64,000 nt of DNA from the sequence record MN794232.1; one strand, 5' to 3'. A program made the position numbers and the translations under genes. The notes under the pieces are model-generated. The model was not told where the DNA came from and searched no databases. It saw only the letters and a program-made list of their open reading frames with translations. Below, piece by piece: positions 49,151 through 61,005 of the stretch; the first letter of the stretch is position 1, and each line of letters starts with the position of its first letter.

Positions 49151-49195
49151 GGGAGACACGGGAATCGAACCCATTGCCTTGACCACATATCTCCC
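49151..49195 (-). pseudogene. tRNA minihelix remnant (acceptor + T arm only)
   Basis: GGGAGAT/GTCTCCC stem, ATGGG-TTCGATT-CCCGT; no CCA. Confidence 0.6.
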
Positions 49196-52149: not shown

Positions 52150-52238
52150 TGGCGGAGATACTGGGAATCGAACCCAGAGAACGCTATTAACGTCCGACAC
52201 CTTAGCAGGGTGCTGTCATACCTTTAGACCATATCTCC
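52150..52238 (-). tRNA. tRNA-Ser(GCT)
   Basis: cloverleaf, long variable arm, CCA. Confidence 0.93.
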
Positions 52239-52243
52239 GTAGA

Positions 52244-52423
52244 TTATTTTTTACCACGCTCTGCTTTGCTAATCTCGACAGCAGCGATTTGTGCGTTTGC
52301 TTCTTTCTCAGTATCATGAGTACCAAGTACTCTACCTTTAGATGAAAGAGCAACCCATTTGTCGCCACGCTTCTCGACTTTCTCAACAAGCTTGTGATAT
52401 TCATCAAATGTTTTAAGTTTCAT
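52244..52423 (-). CDS. 59-aa probable internal head protein (not in ORF track)
   Basis: MKLKTFDEYHKLVE...; GAGG RBS; TATAAATA at 52449-52456. Confidence 0.7.
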   Translation of the reverse strand: MKLKTFDEYHKLVEKVEKRGDKWVALSSKGRVLGTHDTEKEANAQIAAVEISKAERGKK

Positions 52424-52625
52424 GTGTCATCCCTCAGTTAGTTTATTGTATTTATAACTGAACGACTTTTAAACAGTGGCATGCTGCTCTCATGCTCAGA
52501 CACATATTTGCTCTTATTGCAGGCGTGTGCCACGCGCAGCGCAGATCCCTTTTGATAATTTAATGACCAGCGGGACTCTTAGCAGGTCTATTCACTCTCT
52601 TTCGATTCGCGTTGCTAAGTGAATT

Positions 52626-52702
52626 TGGTGCCCAACCCGAGATTCGAACTCGGAACTTCTAGTGTTTGAAACTAGCGACTCTGCCAATTGGCCTAGTTGG
52701 GC
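52626..52702 (-). tRNA. tRNA-Leu(CAA), short variable loop
   Basis: CTAGT-TTCAAAC-ACTAG; CCA. Confidence 0.88.
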
Positions 52703-52706
52703 TTGA

Positions 52707-52809
52707 ATAAGCTGCCGCAACTCTTTAATCCCTAACACCTGTCAGCTTTCGCTCGGCTGAGACCGTTTTTCAACGGCGGTAGTCTAGCTTCGTATAGAAC
52801 GCGGCTTAT
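52707..52809 (-). ncRNA. candidate structured RNA
   Basis: closing ATAAGC/GCTTAT stem; two GAAA-capped hairpins. Confidence 0.45.
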
Positions 52810-52818
52810 GCTAGAGTT

Positions 52819-52895
52819 TGGTACGCACGGGCGGATTCGAACCGCCATCCCTGAGATTTTAAGCCTCATGCCTCTGCCAATTGGACCACGTGCGC
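52819..52895 (-). tRNA. tRNA-Leu(TAA), short variable loop
   Basis: TGAGG-CTTAAAA-TCTCA; CCA. Confidence 0.88.
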
Positions 52896-52897
52896 AT

Positions 52898-52971
52898 TGG
52901 AGCCCGAACAGAGAATCGAACTCTGACCGCGGGATTTGCAATCCCTCATACTTCCATTATACGATTCGGGC
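52898..52971 (-). tRNA. tRNA-Cys(GCA)
   Basis: cloverleaf, CCA. Confidence 0.92.
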
Positions 52972-53074
52972 AATATGTTAGTGCATTGCATGAGCTACTG
53001 GCGATCTTAATGGGTATTTCAAGCATTCAGAATTCCCATGCGCTACTACAATGCTTTTTTCGCTAAATGCACTT

Positions 53075-53151
53075 TGGGGTGACAGACGGGGATCGAACCC
53101 GCATCTTCCGGAATCACAACCCGGGGGTATTTCCACTTCACCCACTGCCAC
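53075..53151 (-). tRNA. tRNA-His(GTG)
   Basis: cloverleaf, C73; position -1 is T. Confidence 0.9.
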
Positions 53152-53205
53152 ACCAAAGTACACTTTGGGATGTTTACGACATCAAACGAATGCGCTCCCT
53201 GTGCA

Positions 53206-53448
53206 TTAATCAGATTTCTTTAAGTAGATACTATCAGGCGATAATTCTCTTGTAAACATATTTTTGAAATAAATTTCAATGTCTGCTTCAGTTGTTGAAG
53301 ACTCAATTTCAAGAGCACGCTCAAGAATCTTGTTACGCTTAAACCCAGCTCGCCAACAATCAAACATAAGTCTGTCCATACGTTGAAGCTTTTCAATTTG
53401 ATTCGAGTTTACGTATTCGTGAGTTTCAAGTAATGCAGGCGTATTCAT
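53206..53448 (-). CDS. hypothetical protein
   Basis: ORF between tRNAs, start MNTP. Confidence 0.55.
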   Translation of the reverse strand: MNTPALLETHEYVNSNQIEKLQRMDRLMFDCWRAGFKRNKILERALEIESSTTEADIEIYFKNMFTRELSPDSIYLKKSD

Positions 53449-53472
53449 AATATAGTTCTCATCATAAAAGAA

Positions 53473-53546
53473 TGGTAGCCCCTGACGGATTCGAGCCGTC
53501 TCTACTTCTGTGTAAAAGAAGCGTACTCCCATTATACTAAGGGGCT
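53473..53546 (-). tRNA. tRNA-Val(TAC)
   Basis: cloverleaf, CCA. Confidence 0.9.
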
Positions 53547-53552
53547 AGAATT

Positions 53553-53628
53553 TGGAGCGTCTACACGGATTCGAACCGAGACGAGTGACTTGGAAGGACA
53601 CCATGCTACCAATTGACATCATAGACGC
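53553..53628 (-). tRNA. tRNA-Gly(TCC)
   Basis: cloverleaf, CCA. Confidence 0.9.
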
Positions 53629-54053
53629 ATTGTTAATCTGAAGCATCAAACAAATCACGTATAGCACGTAGATTTGTAAGCTCTACTGTAAGTGTTCTAA
53701 TAAAGAACGGGTTGGTCTCTTTTGCGAGACGTTTTTCAACATCACGAATTTTATCGCGAATGTTGCCCTTGCTTAGTGTAAAGTAGTCATGCTTCTTTCT
53801 CTTCGTTTGAGGTTAAAATCAGGTTAACGTGCTCATTCACTTCTTGCTCGATTTGCCACTGTTCGTAGACATACTCAGCGTATAAAAGTGTTTCGTACAT
53901 GTTCACCCTTTTTGAATGAATTTAAGCTTACGTTTAAGCTTGCCACGAGATTTATGTCGCTTACACAGTTTAGCACCGTGATAGCTATGATATTGATAAA
54001 AGCTAGTTAGCTTCTTATACAATGATTTCATGCATACCTCATGTTTTTGAATT

Positions 54054-54129
54054 TGGTGGAGACACCGATACTCGAAATCGGATCTAATGGCTTATGAGAC
54101 CATTGCTCTACCACTTGAGCTACATCTCC
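54054..54129 (-). tRNA. tRNA-Met(CAT), probably elongator
   Basis: cloverleaf, CCA. Confidence 0.85.
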
Positions 54130-54155
54130 AAAATCAGTAATTAACTCATTTAATC

Positions 54156-54475
54156 GCACACGGGCTGACACCATATATTTATGGTCTGAGCGAGGAACCA
54201 CATAGTGGGTACTGTCACCTCATCTTAGTTTTGATTGTTTTACATGACGATAACTAGAAACGTTCATAATAATGCCACGCGATACTTCCTGTATCACGGC
54301 TAACTGAGTTAGCAAACTTGCCTTGCGGCTGTAGTGTCGTTTCCGACGAATTAAGTACAGACAATACCGAAGTGTTTTTTCGTCTTTTGCATTAATCGGA
54401 GTTGACTAGCTTATTGATTCTCAACAAGCAAATATCGTCTGTTTCAGCGACGCGCCTATCTGACTATTTCTAGGC
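54156..54475 (-). ncRNA. candidate large structured ncRNA (about 320 nt)
   Basis: no ORF; at least 8 hairpins incl. C(UUCG)G, GAAA and GCAA tetraloops. Confidence 0.6.
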
Positions 54476-54576
54476 AGAGAGAATCTTTCCTTTCAAGCTG
54501 CGCCGAAGCACTACCCAGGTTAAGATCATCACTTCTTTTAAGTAATTTTCAATTGTTTGCTGTATATTGTCTCTCT
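54476..54576 (-). ncRNA. CAGCAA-module RNA G
   Basis: AGAGAGA/TCTCTCT closing stem, ATACAGCAAACAAT. Confidence 0.6.
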
Positions 54577-54634
54577 AATCATACTCATGATATGCCGAAG
54601 CAAAGTATCATTCGCCGCATGATAGAGCTTAATT

Positions 54635-54710
54635 TGGCATCCCCAGAGGGATTTGAACCCACAACCCACGACTTAGAAGGTCGTTGCTCTTCCAATTGAG
54701 CTATGAGGAC
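54635..54710 (-). tRNA. tRNA-Arg(TCT)
   Basis: cloverleaf, CCA. Confidence 0.93.
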
Positions 54711-54786
54711 ATTAAAAGAATTCGATCCATGAGCTATTGCGCAGACGATGGTAGTAAAGAGACTCTGCACTCATGTGATCGAAATT

Positions 54787-54861
54787 TGGTGGACACGCAG
54801 GGAGTCGAACCCTATCCTCCTCATTGCAAGTGAGGCGCTTTCCCAATTAAGCTAACGGCCC
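54787..54861 (-). tRNA. tRNA-Ala(TGC), imperfect acceptor stem
   Basis: G3-U70 present; stem pairs only with a bulge. Confidence 0.75.
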
Positions 54862-54871
54862 AATGTTCGTT

Positions 54872-55081
54872 TTACAACTGTGTGATTGAGATATGATCCC
54901 ATCCGTATAAACCTTCAAGTTCTTCAATAGGCTCACAAACAATGTCAGAAATATATTCAGCAACTTTTGCTTCAATTTCTTCATCAGATAGCTTTTCATC
55001 AATTGCAAAAGCATCTTCATTATTGTTGCCACCGAAATAGCCGCCAATGTCATATTCACACCATACTGAAATATAGTTCAT
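54872..55081 (-). CDS. hypothetical acidic protein
   Basis: GAGAATAACATG; MNYISVWCEYD. Confidence 0.65.
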   Translation of the reverse strand: MNYISVWCEYDIGGYFGGNNNEDAFAIDEKLSDEEIEAKVAEYISDIVCEPIEELEGLYGWDHISITQL

Positions 55082-55105
55082 GTTATTCTCACAGTTGTTT
55101 GAAAA

Positions 55106-55181
55106 TGGTGCCCTGACACGGATTTGAACCGCGAACCTGCTCATTACAAGTGAGCTGCACTGCCAGTTGTGCTATCAGGGC
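55106..55181 (-). tRNA. tRNA-Thr(TGT)
   Basis: cloverleaf, CCA. Confidence 0.93.
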
Positions 55182-55187
55182 GTTACT

Positions 55188-55300
55188 GAGTGTTATTACT
55201 TGCGTCGTCCAGACCAGAGATACCAACTCTGAAAGGGAATCGAACCCCAAACATTTCTTTTCGTAAGAAGAATATTAGTAATTGTTTGCTGAAAACACTC
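55188..55300 (-). ncRNA. circularly permuted tRNA mimic (YrlA-like) RNA F
   Basis: terminal stem, CAGCAAACA bulge, inner stem, variable-like hairpin, T arm, capped acceptor hairpin, D-like hairpin. Confidence 0.75.
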
Positions 55301-55309
55301 TTCGGTATT

Positions 55310-55383
55310 TGGCAGGGGATAACGGATTCGAACCGGTACTGCGTGAGTCAAAGTCACGTATGCTGCCTTTACATCAATCCCCT
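55310..55383 (-). tRNA. tRNA-Gln(TTG)
   Basis: cloverleaf, CCA. Confidence 0.92.
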
Positions 55384-55402
55384 ATTATTCTTAAATTATC
55401 TT

Positions 55403-55478
55403 TGGCGGAACCGACGGGGCTTGAACCCGCTTCCTTTCCCGTGACAGGGGAATATGCACCCAGTTACACCTCGGCTCC
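55403..55478 (-). tRNA. tRNA-Asp(GTC)
   Basis: cloverleaf, CCA. Confidence 0.93.
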
Positions 55479-55550
55479 CCAAAGACAACTTAAAGTAGTT
55501 GCTTTGTTTTTTTTTCAAGTTCACACTTAACGGCAGTGACTCTCCGAATT

Positions 55551-55626
55551 TGGCGGACCGCCCGAGACTCGAACTCGGAACTCCTCGCTTAACAGGCGAG
55601 CACTCTAACCATTGAGTTAGCGATCC
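55551..55626 (-). tRNA. tRNA-Asn(GTT)
   Basis: cloverleaf, CCA. Confidence 0.93.
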
Positions 55627-56000
55627 ATATTCTTTTGTAATGCGTGTTCTTCACGATGGCAGTTAGAACAAAGCATAATGCACTTATCTAACTCAGTTTC
55701 GATTCTCGACCATGATATAGTCTGACTAGAGATACCGAAATCTTTCTCGTTTGGATCAAGATGATGAAACTCTAATGCTTCAATGCATCTATCATACCCG
55801 CATCGTTCACAACAACCACCTTTATATTCAACGGCTCTTAGTTTAGCACGCTTTCTATAAGAAATGACTGCTTCTTTATTCTTTCGTTTTCGTTCAGCAT
55901 CAGTGTGCTTTCGTCGATTCTTACCGTTGTATAAACCAGCACATCGACGACTACAGAATTTATTAAGTGCGTCTGCACCACACTCTAAGCATTTATTCAT
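55617..56000 (-). mobile_element. HNH endonuclease in tRNA cluster
   Basis: CLEC..CSRRC; CERCG...LEFHHLDP...LCSNCHREEH. Confidence 0.85.
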
Positions 56001-56144
56001 TTTTTGAGTTACCTATTTAAGTTTAAAAGATAACTCAGTGATAAAGTGTTTAGGCGCCACATTCGTAAGTGAATGACTCTATTACTACTTAGCAATTACA
56101 TTCAAGCGTTACCAAGAATCATGCCACGTAGCTTTAAATTAAAC

Positions 56145-56202
56145 AGCAATCCTTTTCTCTTTTTGCAAATAAAAGTTTTGTATTGTTTGCTGAAAGATTG
56201 CT
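56145..56202 (-). ncRNA. minimal CAGCAA-module RNA H
   Basis: AGCAATC/GATTGCT stem, TTTCAGCAAACAAT. Confidence 0.55.
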
Positions 56203-56208
56203 TAATTC

Positions 56209-56282
56209 TGGCAGGGACATAGAGATTCGAACTCTAACGAACGGGTTTGGAATCCGCCATGCTGCCGTTACATCATGTCCCT
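56209..56282 (-). tRNA. tRNA-Trp(CCA)
   Basis: cloverleaf, CCA. Confidence 0.9.
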
Positions 56283-56288
56283 AAAATT

Positions 56289-56362
56289 TGGTAGCCCCAG
56301 ACAGACTCGAACTGTCAACGTGCGATTATCGGTCGCGTGTTTTACCGTTAAACTATGGAGCT
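56289..56362 (-). tRNA. tRNA-Ile(GAT), C at position 33
   Basis: loop CCGATAA. Confidence 0.85.
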
Positions 56363-56426
56363 AAAGTGAGCACATTTCAGTGCTCGTGTTAATCGGTTAA
56401 GTGACTAAACTTCCCGGTTAACTAAT

Positions 56427-56525
56427 TGGCGGAAGACTAGGGATTCGAACCCTAACATCACCTCCCGGTGACCGACGGTTTTCAAGACCGTTGCCGCTAC
56501 CCAGAATCTTTCGGCTAAGCCTTCC
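56427..56525 (-). tRNA. tRNA-Ser(TGA), enlarged D loop
   Basis: 99 nt, long variable arm, CCA. Confidence 0.88.
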
Positions 56526-56532
56526 ATTAATT

Positions 56533-56608
56533 TGGTAGCGAGTGCCAGAATCGAACTGACCTAAACTAGCTTATGAGACTAGTGAGTTCACCAGAACTCT
56601 AACTCGCA
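56533..56608 (-). tRNA. tRNA-Met(CAT), initiator-like
   Basis: 1:72 mismatch and A11-U24; lacks the three G-C anticodon-stem pairs. Confidence 0.75.
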
Positions 56609-56710
56609 ATTATTCAACAGCTTGCGTTCTTTGGTCTGTTTATCGCTGTCTGAACTGAGTTCGCCGAGCGATCAATAGATTAAGTTGAATTGCAGTATGC
56701 AAGCTAAATT

Positions 56711-56796
56711 TGGTGGAGCGTAGAGGAATCGAACCTCTCTTCCCATTACGGGACACGGATTTACAGTCCGCTGCCGCACCTTGCGGCTTACGCTCC
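56711..56796 (-). tRNA. tRNA-Tyr(GTA)
   Basis: cloverleaf, variable arm, CCA. Confidence 0.93.
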
Positions 56797-56802
56797 AGAA
56801 TT

Positions 56803-56876
56803 TGGTACTCGATACGGGAGTCGAACCCGTCCTACTTCCTTGAAAGGGAAGTGACCTACCGATAGTCGAATCGAGC
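56803..56876 (-). tRNA. tRNA-Glu(TTC)
   Basis: cloverleaf, CCA. Confidence 0.92.
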
Positions 56877-56939
56877 ATTAAATTGTATATTGATTTGCAA
56901 GCTAATCAACTCGCAAAGCGATACACAATGTATCTAATT

Positions 56940-57016
56940 TGGTACGCCGCCCTGGACTCGAACCAGACACCTGAGAGTTAAAAGCTCCCTGCTCTTCCAT
57001 GATGAGCTACCGACGC
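56940..57016 (-). tRNA. tRNA-Lys(TTT)
   Basis: cloverleaf, CCA. Confidence 0.92.
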
Positions 57017-57027
57017 ATTATAAAATC

Positions 57028-57102
57028 TGGTGGGTCGCAAGAGATTCGAACTCTCACCGTTCTGGTTAAAAGCCAGATGTACTACCGTTATACGAACGAC
57101 CC
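57028..57102 (-). tRNA. tRNA-Lys(TTT), second copy
   Basis: cloverleaf, CCA. Confidence 0.92.
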
Positions 57103-57108
57103 AGAATG

Positions 57109-57183
57109 TGGTGCACCCCCTCGGAATCGAACCGAGCACTGCGGGACTTCAATCCGTCGCTTTTCCTGATAAGCTAAGGGTGC
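57109..57183 (-). tRNA. tRNA-Phe(GAA), distorted anticodon arm
   Basis: GGA-TTGAAG-TCC gives a 6-nt loop, or a mismatched stem with a 7-nt loop. Confidence 0.65.
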
Positions 57184-57184
57184 A

Positions 57185-57262
57185 TGGTACGCAAGAAGAG
57201 ATTCGAACTCTTAACTTCTGGTTTCTAAGACCAGTGCCTCTGCCAGATTGGGCTACTTGCGC
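57185..57262 (-). tRNA. tRNA-Leu(TAG), short variable loop
   Basis: CTGGT-CTTAGAA-ACCAG; CCA. Confidence 0.88.
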
Positions 57263-57297
57263 ATTGTTTGTTTTTGAACGTTACTTCGTTCTTCTTC

Positions 57298-57418
57298 ATT
57301 GTACATGATGTTTATATCGTTGTAAACATCTTTTTTGAAAAACTTTTCATTAACTTTTGAATGATATTTCGCTTTTCTCTATTGTACATGATGTTTATAT
57401 CGTTGTAAACATCTTTTT
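57298..57418 (-). repeat. exact 38-bp direct repeat = tandem promoters
   Basis: 57298-57335 and 57381-57418; TTTACA-17-TACAAT with 8-bp inverted repeat. Confidence 0.85.
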
Positions 57419-57574
57419 AAATTTATTTTGAAGAACTTAACGTTTTCATTTTTCTATGTGTTAATCTTAACACTCGCTCAAGACATCTTAAACACTAATT
57501 TGTGAAAAAGTTCGTTAAATTCTATCATCACGACAGTACTTAACGAGATACGGTCCTAAGCGTATCAAATTAAT

Positions 57575-57700
57575 TCAGAATGGTGAGACTTGAACTCACT
57601 TCGAGTAATAGCGTAAACTAACAGTTGTTGCCAGAGGCTATCAATTATTCTCTACCGAGTATGTTGCAACTCTGCATTTCCCCATTTCTAGGCATTCTGA
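57575..57700 (-). ncRNA. tRNA-like RNA E (acceptor + T arm, expanded core, no CCA)
   Basis: TCAGAATG/CATTCTGA; GTGAG-TTCAAGT-CTCAC. Confidence 0.6.
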
Positions 57701-57704
57701 AATA

Positions 57705-57780
57705 TGGCACCCCACAGAAGATTCGAACTTCTAACCTGCGCCTTCGTAGGACGCTGCTCTTCCAATTGAGCTAGTAGGGC
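57705..57780 (-). tRNA. tRNA-Arg(ACG)
   Basis: cloverleaf, CCA. Confidence 0.93.
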
Positions 57781-57787
57781 ATTAAAC

Positions 57788-57864
57788 TGGTCCGTGACAA
57801 GCGATTCGAACGCTTAACTTCTCCGCCCCAAACGGAGTACTCTACCAGATTGAGCTAGTCACGG
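57788..57864 (-). tRNA. tRNA-Pro(TGG)
   Basis: cloverleaf, CCA. Confidence 0.93.
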
Positions 57865-57873
57865 ATTTTAAAT

Positions 57874-57947
57874 TGGTCGGGACGAAGAGACTCGAACTCT
57901 TACCACATGCTCCCAAAGCATGAACGCTACCTTTACGCCACGTCCCG
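57874..57947 (-). tRNA. tRNA-Pro(TGG), second copy
   Basis: cloverleaf, CCA. Confidence 0.92.
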
Positions 57948-58079
57948 TTTGTTCTTTAACTTTGTTTATCATACTCTGCTTTCAAAGTACGTTAAACAAA
58001 ATTTTTGATTTTCTTTCGCCCATAAAAAAGGACGCTACGTGCGTCCTCAAGTATACTTCTATGTTATACTATTGGACTA

Positions 58080-58206
58080 CGTTTGTGGAGACCACTCTTG
58101 TTTCGCACACGGATTCGCTAGATACACAAATTCTGAGCGCAGAAAATCGCTGCGTAAAATCATATCAGAATGTGTATTCGAATGTGTCATGGAAACTCTC
58201 TAAACG
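58080..58206 (-). ncRNA. candidate rod-shaped ncRNA
   Basis: nested stems CGTTT/AAACG, ATACACA/TGTGTAT, TTCTGA/TCAGAA, CGCAG/CTGCG; downstream terminator at about 58025-58049. Confidence 0.5.
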
Positions 58207-58315
58207 TTAAAATAAAAATGTTTTTGTTTGTATAATAGTACTTATAACACCAAATTTGACGATTTGCGGTATTTTCGCAGAAAATTGAAAAAAAAATCAA
58301 CTTTCTGCGATTTTC

Positions 58316-58561
58316 TTATCGACCTAGGTGTTTTCGCTTGTTCATTTCAACGAGGATTTCATCGTTGTAATGACGGTTCAGTTCAACATACTTCTTGTGC
58401 TGATCTGAAGTCAACTCGTTGGTGTCATTCAGATGTTTCAAGAATCCAAGAGGTTTGCGAAACGACTTGCGATATTCGTTCAGACGCTCGTCCGTTAGAT
58501 TATGCAGTTGTTTCGGAGTCAGTAACGTTTTATTGATGTCAAAACTCATGTTGTACCTCAC
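58316..58561 (-). CDS. hypothetical protein
   Basis: GAGG RBS before MSFD. Confidence 0.6.
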   Translation of the reverse strand: MRYNMSFDINKTLLTPKQLHNLTDERLNEYRKSFRKPLGFLKHLNDTNELTSDQHKKYVELNRHYNDEILVEMNKRKHLGR

Positions 58562-58574
58562 TTGTTATTAAAAT

Positions 58575-58690
58575 TGGTAGTCGGGGCTGGATTCGAACCA
58601 GCGACCACGTGCTTAACAGGCAATTGAAGGAGTGCTGGAGCGATACTTGACAGTATCATTCTTCGTGCTCTACCACTGAGCTACCCGACT
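58575..58690 (-). ncRNA. tRNA-Asn-like RNA A with 41-nt insertion in anticodon stem
   Basis: removing the insert gives a perfect 75-nt tRNA-Asn(GTT) with CCA. Confidence 0.85.
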
Positions 58691-58695
58691 ATGAA

Positions 58696-59217
58696 TTATT
58701 TAACTTTGAACTTCAAATTACGCCAGTCAAAGTTTCGTTTGTTCTTTGTGTTGTAGAACGTGCCCCAATCAATAGCAATCGGACAGTTCTTACTACCTAC
58801 ACGAGCGATAAAGACATCGTGAGTCTCGCTGTAACGCTCTCTAAGCTCTTTTAAACGCTTATCGTAGTTAGCGATATACTCTGCACACGCTTTGTTGTAA
58901 GCTGCTTTAGAGAAGCGTTCGTCACTCGAAAATACATTACCCAGATAAGGTCGAATAACACGAACTCGTTCTTTAGACCAACCCATACTAAAGCTGTTTT
59001 CAATCTCACCTGAGATTTCACCAGTCTTCTTACATCTAGCAAGAATGACCCAGCAACGTTCACGCCGAAAATCTTTTCGTACGTACACGTTAACGTGCTT
59101 GTCAATGTACTCTTGATAACGAGCGTTATACTCAGCACGCAGTTTATTGCGCACTTCAGGCGACATTGCAGCCCGTTCTTCTTTCGAAAACGCTTGTGCG
59201 AATTTCAATGGTTTCAT
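58696..59217 (-). CDS. hypothetical basic protein
   Basis: GAGGA RBS, start MKPL. Confidence 0.65.
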   Translation of the reverse strand: MKPLKFAQAFSKEERAAMSPEVRNKLRAEYNARYQEYIDKHVNVYVRKDFRRERCWVILARCKKTGEISGEIENSFSMGWSKERVRVIRPYLGNVFSSDERFSKAAYNKACAEYIANYDKRLKELRERYSETHDVFIARVGSKNCPIAIDWGTFYNTKNKRNFDWRNLKFKVK

Positions 59218-59230
59218 TATAATTTCCTCT

Positions 59231-59470
59231 TGGCGCCGCTCGTGTGAATCGAACACACGTCAAACACAACACCTCGTCCACCCAATTAGAGTTTCGAAGT
59301 AAGAGCTAATCAGCATTTCGGAGCAGTCGAGCGTTATTTCTACGAGTGAGCTTTCGACAACTCACACGCACTTTCTACCCGGTCCCAGTGATTCGGTACC
59401 AACGCAGGTTGCGAACCTACGTCTGCACTAATGCTGGGAAAACACTGCGTATTGTACACCAGTTAGCGGC
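59231..59470 (-). ncRNA. 240-nt RNA I with tRNA-like ends and CCA
   Basis: GCCGCT/AGCGGC-G-CCA; GTGTG-TTCGATT-CACAC. Confidence 0.75.
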
Positions 59471-59472
59471 AT

Positions 59473-59703
59473 TTAAAGATAGCTATCAAAGACAGCATCA
59501 TCAACTTCTTCAATATTGATGTCAGCGTAACACTCATTCGCAATTGCTTGAATTTCATCTATTGAAACTGTACCTGCGTACAATACAACAGCGTCGTTCG
59601 GAATCACGACATCACACATGTATTTGTTAAACATTGCAGTTCTGAAATCAGAATCAACAGAGTAACCGTGCATTGATGTGATAACTAGCAATTTATGTGA
59701 CAT
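59473..59703 (-). CDS. hypothetical protein
   Basis: GAGGA RBS; upstream TTGACA promoter. Confidence 0.65.
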   Translation of the reverse strand: MSHKLLVITSMHGYSVDSDFRTAMFNKYMCDVVIPNDAVVLYAGTVSIDEIQAIANECYADINIEEVDDAVFDSYL

Positions 59704-59782
59704 AATGTTTTCCTCGTGTAGTTGATAATGTGTATACTACACGTTGATGAAACGCCTGTCAACAACTTTTTCAAATTATTTT

Positions 59783-59859
59783 TGGTAGCCCCTCTCGGAT
59801 TCGAACCGAGAACCTGACGATTATGAGTCGTCTGCTACTACCGTTACAGCTAAGGGGCT
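59783..59859 (-). tRNA. tRNA-Ile2-like (CAT)
   Basis: AGCCCCT acceptor and GACTCATAATCG arm resemble enterobacterial Ile2. Confidence 0.8.
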
Positions 59860-60226
59860 ATCGTTCTAGAAATCTACCGACTTTAGCAGCGAAGATGTTT
59901 GCTTCTTCTGCAATCAAAGCAGTTGATTTCATTTGATGAAAAGCGTCTTGTTGATGCAGAACATCTAGTTTACCAGCGCATTTCATCAGTTCTTTTACTG
60001 ATTGCATAATCTCAATGTTATCAAGCTGACTCGTGTCAGGGTGATGATTGAGACTATCCAAGACAGGGAGTACTTGTTGATAGTAACCCATGCCGATGAA
60101 GTTTATCATAAGTCTGTACTGCATTTCAACAGCAAATGTACAATATTTTCGAAGATTGCGTTTTACAATCTCACAGCGATGTAAGATACAATCAAGTTCG
60201 TCATTTATGTCATCAAACTTATTCAT
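59858..60226 (-). CDS. hypothetical protein
   Basis: GAGG RBS, start MNKFDD. Confidence 0.6.
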   Translation of the reverse strand: MNKFDDINDELDCILHRCEIVKRNLRKYCTFAVEMQYRLMINFIGMGYYQQVLPVLDSLNHHPDTSQLDNIEIMQSVKELMKCAGKLDVLHQQDAFHQMKSTALIAEEANIFAAKVGRFLER

Positions 60227-60240
60227 AAAACCTCGAAAAT

Positions 60241-60360
60241 TGGTGGAGAGTGATGGATTTGAACCACCGACCAAAAGATTTACCAGTTAAGGTTTGCAGC
60301 ATGAATGCTTGTCAGTATTCTTTAACATTCTTTTGCTCTACCAGACTGAGCTAACTCTCC
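60241..60360 (-). ncRNA. tRNA-like RNA B with 50-nt structured anticodon loop
   Basis: canonical acceptor, D and T arms and CCA; AAAGA/TCTTT stem encloses module. Confidence 0.85.
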
Positions 60361-60365
60361 ATTGT

Positions 60366-60476
60366 ATTACTACTTTGTTTCGCTTGTCAGGGCGTCGAAA
60401 CGCTACCTAACCAAGGATTCGAACCTTTTAACCAACACCTCGCGAAAATTATTTTTCTCGTTGGCAAAGTAGTAAT
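60366..60476 (-). ncRNA. second permuted tRNA mimic RNA J
   Basis: 12-bp terminal stem, hairpin, AAGG-TTCGAAT-CCTT T arm, UUCG-capped hairpin. Confidence 0.6.
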
Positions 60477-60487
60477 GTAAAAACATA

Positions 60488-60613
60488 TAGTTGCGGGTGC
60501 AGGATTCGAACCTACATCACGATCTTATGAATGATATGCGAAATTGATTGCCGTACAGATTCTTATCAGAATCAGTTTTGTGCTACGTGTGCTACCACTT
60601 ACACCAACCCGCA
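60488..60613 (-). ncRNA. tRNA-like RNA C with module insertion
   Basis: D and T arms canonical; 15-bp terminal stem 60484-60621; ends ACTA, not CCA. Confidence 0.8.
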
Positions 60614-60882: not shown

Positions 60883-61005
60883 TGGTCGAGTGTAACGGAA
60901 TCGAACCGTTCCCACGATCTCCCTATGATATGCGTAAATTGGTTGCTGAATATAATCATGTCTGATTACAGTATGCTACGTGTGCTGCCACTACACCAAC
61001 ACTCG
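60883..61005 (-). ncRNA. tRNA-like RNA D with module insertion
   Basis: paralog of C; CCA present; 21-bp perfect inverted repeat 60873-60893/60999-61019. Confidence 0.82.

Follow-up and report, generated by a model that had tools for sequence, protein, structure and literature searches.

Phage T4 encodes two RNAs, RNA C (also termed species 1 RNA, rnaC) and RNA D, for which no biological role is known (PMC3014915; PMC9697503). The RNA described here resembles them in that its gene belongs to a T4-type phage and lies on the tRNA strand, within the syntenic tRNA region; gene 57B is located upstream in both phages. The window, by which we mean the whole 64-kb stretch of DNA that was analyzed (64,000 nt of MN794232.1), is identified by its sequence as a KVP40-type Vibrio phage, and over the stretch 58400-60600 it shares 100% identity with Vibrio phage VH1_2019 and 99% with KVP40 (Schizotequatrovirus, T4-type). 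The window contains 27 tRNAs as called by ARAGORN and 29 as called by Rfam, every one of them on the minus strand, and an element of 240 nt lies within their cluster on the same strand. This element takes up exactly the space that separates the stop codon of an upstream ORF from the ribosome-binding site of a downstream ORF, p317:

59473-59703, minus strand: upstream ORF of 76 aa (KVP40.0318), with its stop codon at 59473-59475
59231-59470, minus strand: the whole RNA, nt 1-240 (window position = 59471 - nt)
59226-59229, minus strand: ribosome-binding site of p317, GAGG (together with the ORF, this feature spans 58696-59229)
58696-59217, minus strand: p317, an ORF of 173 aa (KVP40.0317, phrog_15953), with its start codon at 59215-59217

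No strong promoter or terminator belonging to the element itself was found; promoter-like matches in its vicinity are weak (9/12) and none is kept in the relatives. A tRNA ends 11-15 nt upstream of the element in phages nt-1 and CZ01 and in the metagenomic contig L020. As to the cluster itself (52150-60360, minus strand), 29/29 of its tRNA genes encode CCA and 22/29 have a U at position -1. Among the phage records that we inspected none carries an RNA annotation at this locus, Rfam 15 contains no family for the 240-nt RNA, and literature searches, the reach of which did not extend to the KVP40 genome paper, returned no description of the KVP40 element. The RNA family is new, so far unannotated, and undescribed in the literature searched.

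The first-pass annotation of this stretch proposed a single RNA of approximately 240 nt with tmRNA-like ends and suggested looking for homologs in related phages. Using blastn, the element was found in 49 Vibrio phage records, at identities ranging from 100% down to about 69%. Its structure was described from an alignment of 11 copies that represent seven lineages (KVP40/phi-pp2, VH7D/phi-ST2, D482, F86, VS1/QD01, nt-1/CZ01, and 1.081.O). The RNAalifold consensus of these 11 homologs contains 69 pairs, 36-38 of which show compensatory changes; 36 pairs have changed on both sides. Standard pairs make up 93.4% of the pair cells compared to 79% in column shuffles, and for all five covariation measures 0 of 500 shuffles equaled the observed values. 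When the 3´ partners are slid by 1-3 columns, pairing drops to 36-44%. The element also folds better as a single sequence than its shuffles do (z = -2.9). A covariance model built from the alignment (R1) scores the element at 257 bits and detects it as a single copy, with no paralog in the window, and the alignment-built model identified a twelfth copy at 204 bits on the metagenomic scaffold L020 (164 kb). Column identity peaks in the T-loop (0.99), the 3´ core (0.92), and the junction of helix P2 and hairpin A (0.91), and is lowest in the stems (0.68-0.83). The element at 59231-59470 is thus a genuine conserved structured RNA, the structure of which is proven by covariation, and the proposal of a single RNA of about this length is borne out.

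To the reading that this is not an RNA gene, and is instead a small protein-coding region, a degenerate tRNA, or a tRNA with an intron, we attach virtually no probability. Such a reading could appeal to the short CDSs annotated over the element in D482, F86, and QD01 (3 of the 11 relatives' records inspected) and to an 18-codon AUG frame, ending in UGA, that lies in the core at 59263-59317 (minus strand). However, none of the six frames across the element is free of stops, and the homologs differ by indels that shift the frame. A 1-nt insertion disrupts the 18-codon frame in F86, 5 homologs lack its stop, and its retention in most homologs is explained solely by the invariance of the core nucleotides. 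The short CDS calls are probably spurious. Protein coding was rejected for 59231-59470 as its frames are not conserved, and the internal reading frame that the first-pass annotation had raised finds no conserved counterpart among the 11 homologs. A tRNA or an intron-bearing tRNA was likewise rejected, as the D and anticodon arms are absent and Rfam yields no tRNA or group I intron match at E values up to 10.

The RNA is composed of a tRNA-like domain formed by its two ends, a helix (P2) that closes the core, two long hairpins (A and B), and a 3´ core, arranged from the 5´ end as follows:

59465-59470, minus strand: 5´ strand of P1, the acceptor-like stem (nt 1-6), which pairs with nt 231-236
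59455-59464, minus strand: 10-nt single-stranded loop replacing the D arm, with invariant G11, G12, and G14; unpaired in the consensus
59445-59454, minus strand: 5´ strand of P2 (nt 17-26), which pairs with nt 202-210
59383-59439, minus strand: hairpin A (nt 32-88), 20 pairs, 13 compensatory
59328-59381, minus strand: hairpin B (nt 90-143), 15 pairs, 12 compensatory
59270-59313, minus strand: 3´ core (nt 158-201), with a mean column identity of 0.92, above that of any stem
59261-59269, minus strand: 3´ strand of P2 (nt 202-210)
59242-59258, minus strand: T arm (nt 213-229), a 5-bp stem with the loop UUCGAUU
59231-59240, minus strand: 3´ strand of P1 (nt 231-236), discriminator G237, and encoded CCA (nt 238-240)

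The minus strand contains all of the tmRNA-like end features of the first-pass annotation. The 6-bp P1 is formed by the 5´ GCCGCU and the 3´ AGCGGC, after which come G and CCA; 100% of the P1 cells are paired, 4 of its 6 pairs show compensatory changes, and the seventh position is mismatched. The residue at -1 is a U in 11/11 homologs. There is no D stem, as only 10 nt separate the acceptor stem from P2, and this segment provides the GG loop that stands in for the D arm. P2, which closes the core, has 9 pairs that are 100% paired, 3 of them compensatory. The GAC-GUGUG-UUCGAUU-CACAC sequence at the 3´ end forms the T arm, in which 4 of 5 stem pairs show compensatory changes while the loop (GUUCGAUUC) has an identity of 0.99. 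A 3´ tail of CCA is confined to the KVP40 and VH7D clades, with ACA, AC, or C in the other relatives. Within the tRNA-like domain, conservation is highest in the elbow elements and the stems covary freely, a pattern that would be expected if RNase P or other tRNA enzymes read the shape of this domain.

Hairpin A has an apical loop of 7 nt in all homologs, in which the U at position 2 and the A at position 7 are invariant, and an internal loop with an invariant GAAUCAC. The window sequence of this hairpin, ACGUAGG-UUCGCAA-CCUGCGU, had been described as a second T-loop-like hairpin; the hairpin is there, but the 7-nt loop of the relatives is CUCGCUA or UUAAUUA, neither of which is T-loop-like. 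The base of hairpin A is formed by CCCAG/CUGGG, an actual covarying helix that had been taken for an alternative pairing. In hairpin B, the apical loop is an invariant GUCGAA and the internal loops, AGAAA and GAAAUAA, are rich in A; this hairpin accounts for the GAAA-capped hairpin noted previously, its cap being GUCGAA(A). A resemblance to the start of another putative RNA of the cluster, RNA F, dissolved on inspection, as the shared 9-mer AGUGUUUUC occurs at the level of chance (20 matches with ≤1 mismatch vs 27.8 expected).

The loop of hairpin A bears on whether the RNA might be a decoy or sponge, presenting a tRNA elbow together with an anticodon-loop-like 7-nt loop to a host tRNA-directed enzyme, such as an anticodon nuclease or another tRNA-targeting defence. 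The constant size of this loop with its invariant U2 and A7, the invariant elbow elements, and the heavy investment of the phage in tRNA supply (about 30 tRNAs) would fit such a role. However, the central three bases of the loop vary (CGC or AAU) and therefore no single anticodon is mimicked, the highest conservation is found in the 3´ core and not in hairpin A, and no defence-related neighbor was seen. We therefore consider a decoy function highly improbable.

For nt 157-201, the RNAalifold solution consists of a 3-bp mini-hairpin and a hairpin, neither of which covaries. When every pair of columns was scanned, a better helix emerged, S1, in which nt 158-165 pair with nt 182-189; its 8 pairs are 100% paired in 11/11 homologs, with 2 compensatory and 2 one-sided changes. 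S1 closes an invariant 16-nt loop that contains CUCUUACUUCGAAAC. A candidate stem S2 (nt 170-176 with nt 195-201) is invariant in sequence, and the alignment can for that reason neither support nor refute it. The 3´ core is probably pseudoknotted; S1 and S2 could possibly form an H-type pseudoknot abutting or stacked on P2, and an alternative core contact could be made by UUCGA of the S1 loop kissing the invariant GUCGAA loop of hairpin B. Pseudoknots had been suggested in the first-pass annotation, and a candidate does exist at S1/S2. The pairings it offered for them fare less well: neither CAGUG/CACUG nor CAGCAUU/AAUGCUG shows a compensatory change, the outer pair of the former is lost in 5/11 homologs, and the middle pair of the latter is kept in 1/11, the window sequence itself.

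RNase P recognizes the stacked acceptor and T arms and the elbow of its substrates and has a preference for U at -1. Because the ends of the RNA mimic the acceptor/T-arm top half and the elbow of a tRNA, we infer from this recognition that the RNA is released by tRNA-processing enzymes. The interpretation that we favor, at roughly even confidence, is that of a stable non-coding RNA that is excised by these enzymes and has a protein-binding core. According to this model, the RNA would be transcribed within the polycistronic transcript of the tRNA cluster and excised by the host tRNA-maturation machinery, with RNase P presumably cutting at U-1/G+1 and a tRNA-type 3´ cut falling immediately ahead of the next gene's ribosome-binding site. 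As a Shine-Dalgarno sequence and a start codon follow the 3´ end, this same 3´ cut would also create the 5´ end of the downstream mRNA. The tRNA-like domain would then be a handle for processing and stability, and the working part, which would act in trans, may be the nearly invariant 3´ core together with the loops that do not vary in hairpins A and B. Conservation of this kind points to a specific macromolecular partner; most likely, core and loops would form a compact tertiary fold that binds a protein, for which p317 is the best candidate.

The same junction gives rise to the main rival of the excised stable RNA, a cis-acting leader or tRNA punctuation element that processes, stabilizes, or controls translation of the downstream mRNA, with the conserved core as a sensor or an anti-Shine-Dalgarno partner. 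In every homolog, a Shine-Dalgarno sequence is located 1-5 nt past the 3´ end and is followed by a start codon, as AGAGGAAAUUAU..AUG or GGAGAAUAUUAUG, and this junction holds even where the next ORF is a 69-aa insert and not p317. In addition, the Shine-Dalgarno-like AGGAGG of the distant contig L024 is part of the T-stem and acceptor strand, and a reading of the sequence shows CUCUU of the invariant core loop to be complementary to AAGAG in the ribosome-binding site. A purely cis role would explain the fixed junction with the ribosome-binding site equally well. By contrast, predicted folds of the RNA with its leader, for the KVP40 type and the VS1 type, leave the Shine-Dalgarno sequence free, a mere processing signal needs no core of ~190 nt that both covaries and contains invariant segments, and tight gene packing is normal in T4-like phages. 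These considerations make a cis-acting leader unlikely in our view, though less so than the decoy reading or the tmRNA-like one discussed below.

The candidacy of p317 as the protein partner of the excised RNA comes from its position. In all homolog lineages the p317 gene follows the RNA, either directly or after one small ORF of 69 aa, and this synteny makes it the obvious first candidate. The small ORF between the RNA and p317 is present at 858-1067 in L005, 829-1038 in L008, and 698-907 in L011 (69 aa each), and an ORF of 28 aa is found at 870-953 in L016; the inserted small ORF uses the ribosome-binding site directly after the RNA. The p317 sequence visibly contains many lysine and arginine residues. 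In PHROGs it belongs to phrog_15953, a family of unknown function. Its sole Pfam match, to Colicin_D (tRNase), scored 13.8 bits against a cut-off of 25 and was treated as noise because of this score; NCBIfam gave weak and scattered matches (best E = 0.0076, in 2/9 members), and a sequence search of the PDB returned nothing significant. The AlphaFold model of p317 is confident, with a pLDDT of 85, but matches no PDB structure, and its matches in BFVD are solely to unnamed phage proteins. As p317 has no recognizable fold or family, RNA binding by this protein is a guess drawn from synteny and its Lys/Arg content. That the RNA and p317 together constitute a phage ribonucleoprotein of a hitherto unknown type, with tRNAs as its targets, is a more elaborate proposal that we regard as doubtful. 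One possible task of such a particle would be the maturation of tRNAs with 45-54-nt insertions, and its tRNA-like domain might dock it on tRNA enzymes or the ribosome.

Homologs of p317 with 24-42% identity are found in contigs of large phages, including jumbo phages, several of which have tRNA genes in the flanks that were fetched. A T-loop element is located directly upstream of p317 in 4 of 9 such distant lineages; the other 5 have no such element, which counts against the reading we favor. In L024, a contig of 335 kb, and L016, where p317 is 38-42% identical, the elements are 236 nt and 255 nt, respectively. Both have acceptor pairing, a GG loop like that of the family, a T arm, and an S1-like stem of 5-7 bp with unrelated sequence about 43 nt 5´ of the T-loop (GUCAUGG/CCAUGAC in L024). 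This stem closes a 17-nt loop, UCUUAA..AC, the KVP40-type counterpart of which is CUCUUAC..AAAC. The covariance model matches the distant members weakly, at 11 bits or less, with L026 ambiguous, and their single-sequence folds are not significant. L024 and L016 probably carry the same RNA-p317 arrangement, and these manually recognized motifs suggest a wider RNA family across distant phages, which adds support for S1.

An exact-pattern scan for the KVP40-type 3´ motif added no member beyond the phages already known, with KVP40 and VH7D as the sole matches in IMG/VR and none in the metagenome or GTDB genome collections. The 5´-domain pattern added solely a match in L014, which was rejected as a chance occurrence inside a probable coding region. 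A pattern derived from L016 and L024 recovered the L024 contig again, together with an abundant marine lineage (e.g., L035) in which a UUCUUAAUC..GAAAC motif lies about 44 nt before a T-loop-like hairpin. This lineage was set aside as an unproven family member, as the S1 stem and acceptor pairing are absent and a different hairpin follows the T-loop. At 4670-5900 of L035 (and in part in L031-L048 and L050-L079) there is an abundant, highly conserved, ORF-poor stretch of ~1.2 kb beside the major capsid gene. The contigs of this type are marine T4-like and cyanophage-like, and the stretch, which is absent from Rfam, lies behind a near-consensus sigma-70 promoter; besides GGAUUCGACC and UUCUUAAUCAUUAGAAAC, it contains a T-loop-like hairpin and, after this, a hairpin that covaries.

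The tRNA clusters of these phages contain additional unusual genes. Insertion-bearing tRNA genes, in which the anticodon arm contains 45-54 inserted nt and the total length is 113-121 nt, are found on the minus strand of the window at 60244-60360, 58578-58690, about 60494-60612, and about 60885-61000, and elsewhere at 448-561 in L016, 2286-2399 in L024, and 773-893 and 903-1015 in L026. The KVP40 annotation lists these as tRNA-Pseudo-3, -4, and -5; they are called as tRNAs by Rfam and missed by ARAGORN. Several, from very distant phages, share a GAUUCUGAYAAGAAUC hairpin and a ..AAGAUCGUG junction. The insertions are too small to be group I introns, an identity that was rejected for that reason. 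In four lineages, the insertion-bearing tRNAs co-occur with the p317 gene and a tRNA-ended RNA. Matches to the T-loop consensus (GUUCRANUC) outside called tRNAs are located at 49162, 55237, 57587, and 60416 (minus strand) and may represent further tRNA-like oddities. One of them lies in the 120-nt gap between tRNA-Thr and tRNA-Gln (55185-55305), which is probably the RNA F mentioned above, and another in a short element at 60400-60470.

Large structured RNAs that have proven covariation and lack a known function are rare, and past cases opened new biochemistry. The RNA described here combines a tRNA-like domain of the tmRNA type with a pseudoknot-like core that hardly varies, and does so in a well-studied phage group. 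As KVP40-type phages grow on convenient laboratory hosts such as Vibrio natriegens, deletion of the RNA and pull-down of its partners are feasible, and such work would provide a handle on why phage tRNA clusters carry RNAs of this kind. At minimum, the findings provide a new RNA family to annotate in about 50 genomes.

Among the closest known systems is tmRNA (SsrA), specifically its tRNA-like domain with helix P2. In both, the RNA ends form an acceptor stem and then a T arm, a GG-containing single-stranded loop takes the place of the D arm, and a long helix encloses a large core of hairpins with at least one pseudoknot candidate; in the clade of this window the 3´ end is also N-CCA. The first-pass annotation accordingly called the element tmRNA-shaped, with a non-alanine identity, and noted that it has no G3:U70 and that its discriminator is G, which is true of the window sequence. 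Across the homologs, however, pair 3:70 is C-G in 11/11, the discriminator is G, A, or C depending on the homolog, and CCA is encoded in 4/11 and absent in 7/11, although the tRNAs of this phage, and those adjoining the element in nt-1 and L020, encode it. No tag reading frame, resume codon, or stop is conserved across the homologs, between which indels shift the frames. The tmRNA detectors applied (ARAGORN and Rfam RF00023 and RF01850, among others) did not recognize the element: ARAGORN found no tmRNA in the window, Rfam gave no match to the element at gathering thresholds, and a permissive Rfam scan produced a partial beta_tmRNA match of 14.8 bits, compared to a gathering score of 84. At 240 nt, the RNA is also shorter than a standard one-piece tmRNA (331-374 positions in the Rfam models), and it is phage-encoded, inside a tRNA cluster. 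As the defining features of tmRNA fail, a conserved, aminoacylated tagging function is unlikely, and the non-alanine tmRNA identity is not upheld; judged by its sequence the 240-nt RNA is not a tmRNA, though tmRNA-shaped is a fair description. A looser version, in which a tmRNA-like molecule is charged with a non-alanine amino acid and acts on ribosomes, or titrates SmpB or EF-Tu, draws on a tRNA-like domain with the topology of tmRNA (a GG loop without a D stem, and a core closed by P2), on the G-CCA end in this clade, and on the pseudoknot candidate beside the 3´ strand of P2, where tmRNA has PK4. The variable discriminator, the invariant C3-G70, the frequent lack of CCA, the unconserved frame, and the negative detectors weigh against it, and we consider it very unlikely.

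With canonical tRNA (RF00005), the RNA shares the acceptor stem, the T arm with its GUUCGAUUC loop, the elbow GG, and the U at -1, and model R1 matches real tRNAs weakly, at 11-19 bits, through these tRNA-like parts. The phage RNA differs from tRNA in that the D stem and the anticodon arm are missing and their place is taken by other structure, about 190 nt in size, and the tRNA finders (ARAGORN and Rfam) do not detect it as a tRNA. T4 RNA C, the nearest biological analog, likewise ends in a T arm and an acceptor-like stem. However, RNA C is 139 nt, compared to 240 nt for the Vibrio phage RNA, and consists of two hairpins between the acceptor strands, without a multi-domain core closed by P2; moreover, neither rnaC nor rnaD was matched when model R1 was run on the T4 tRNA region. 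Given the size and fold of RNA C and the missing model match, we treat the two as analogs and not as members of one family. The Vibrio phage RNA may thus be best viewed as a functional analog, rather than a detectable homolog, of T4 RNA C.
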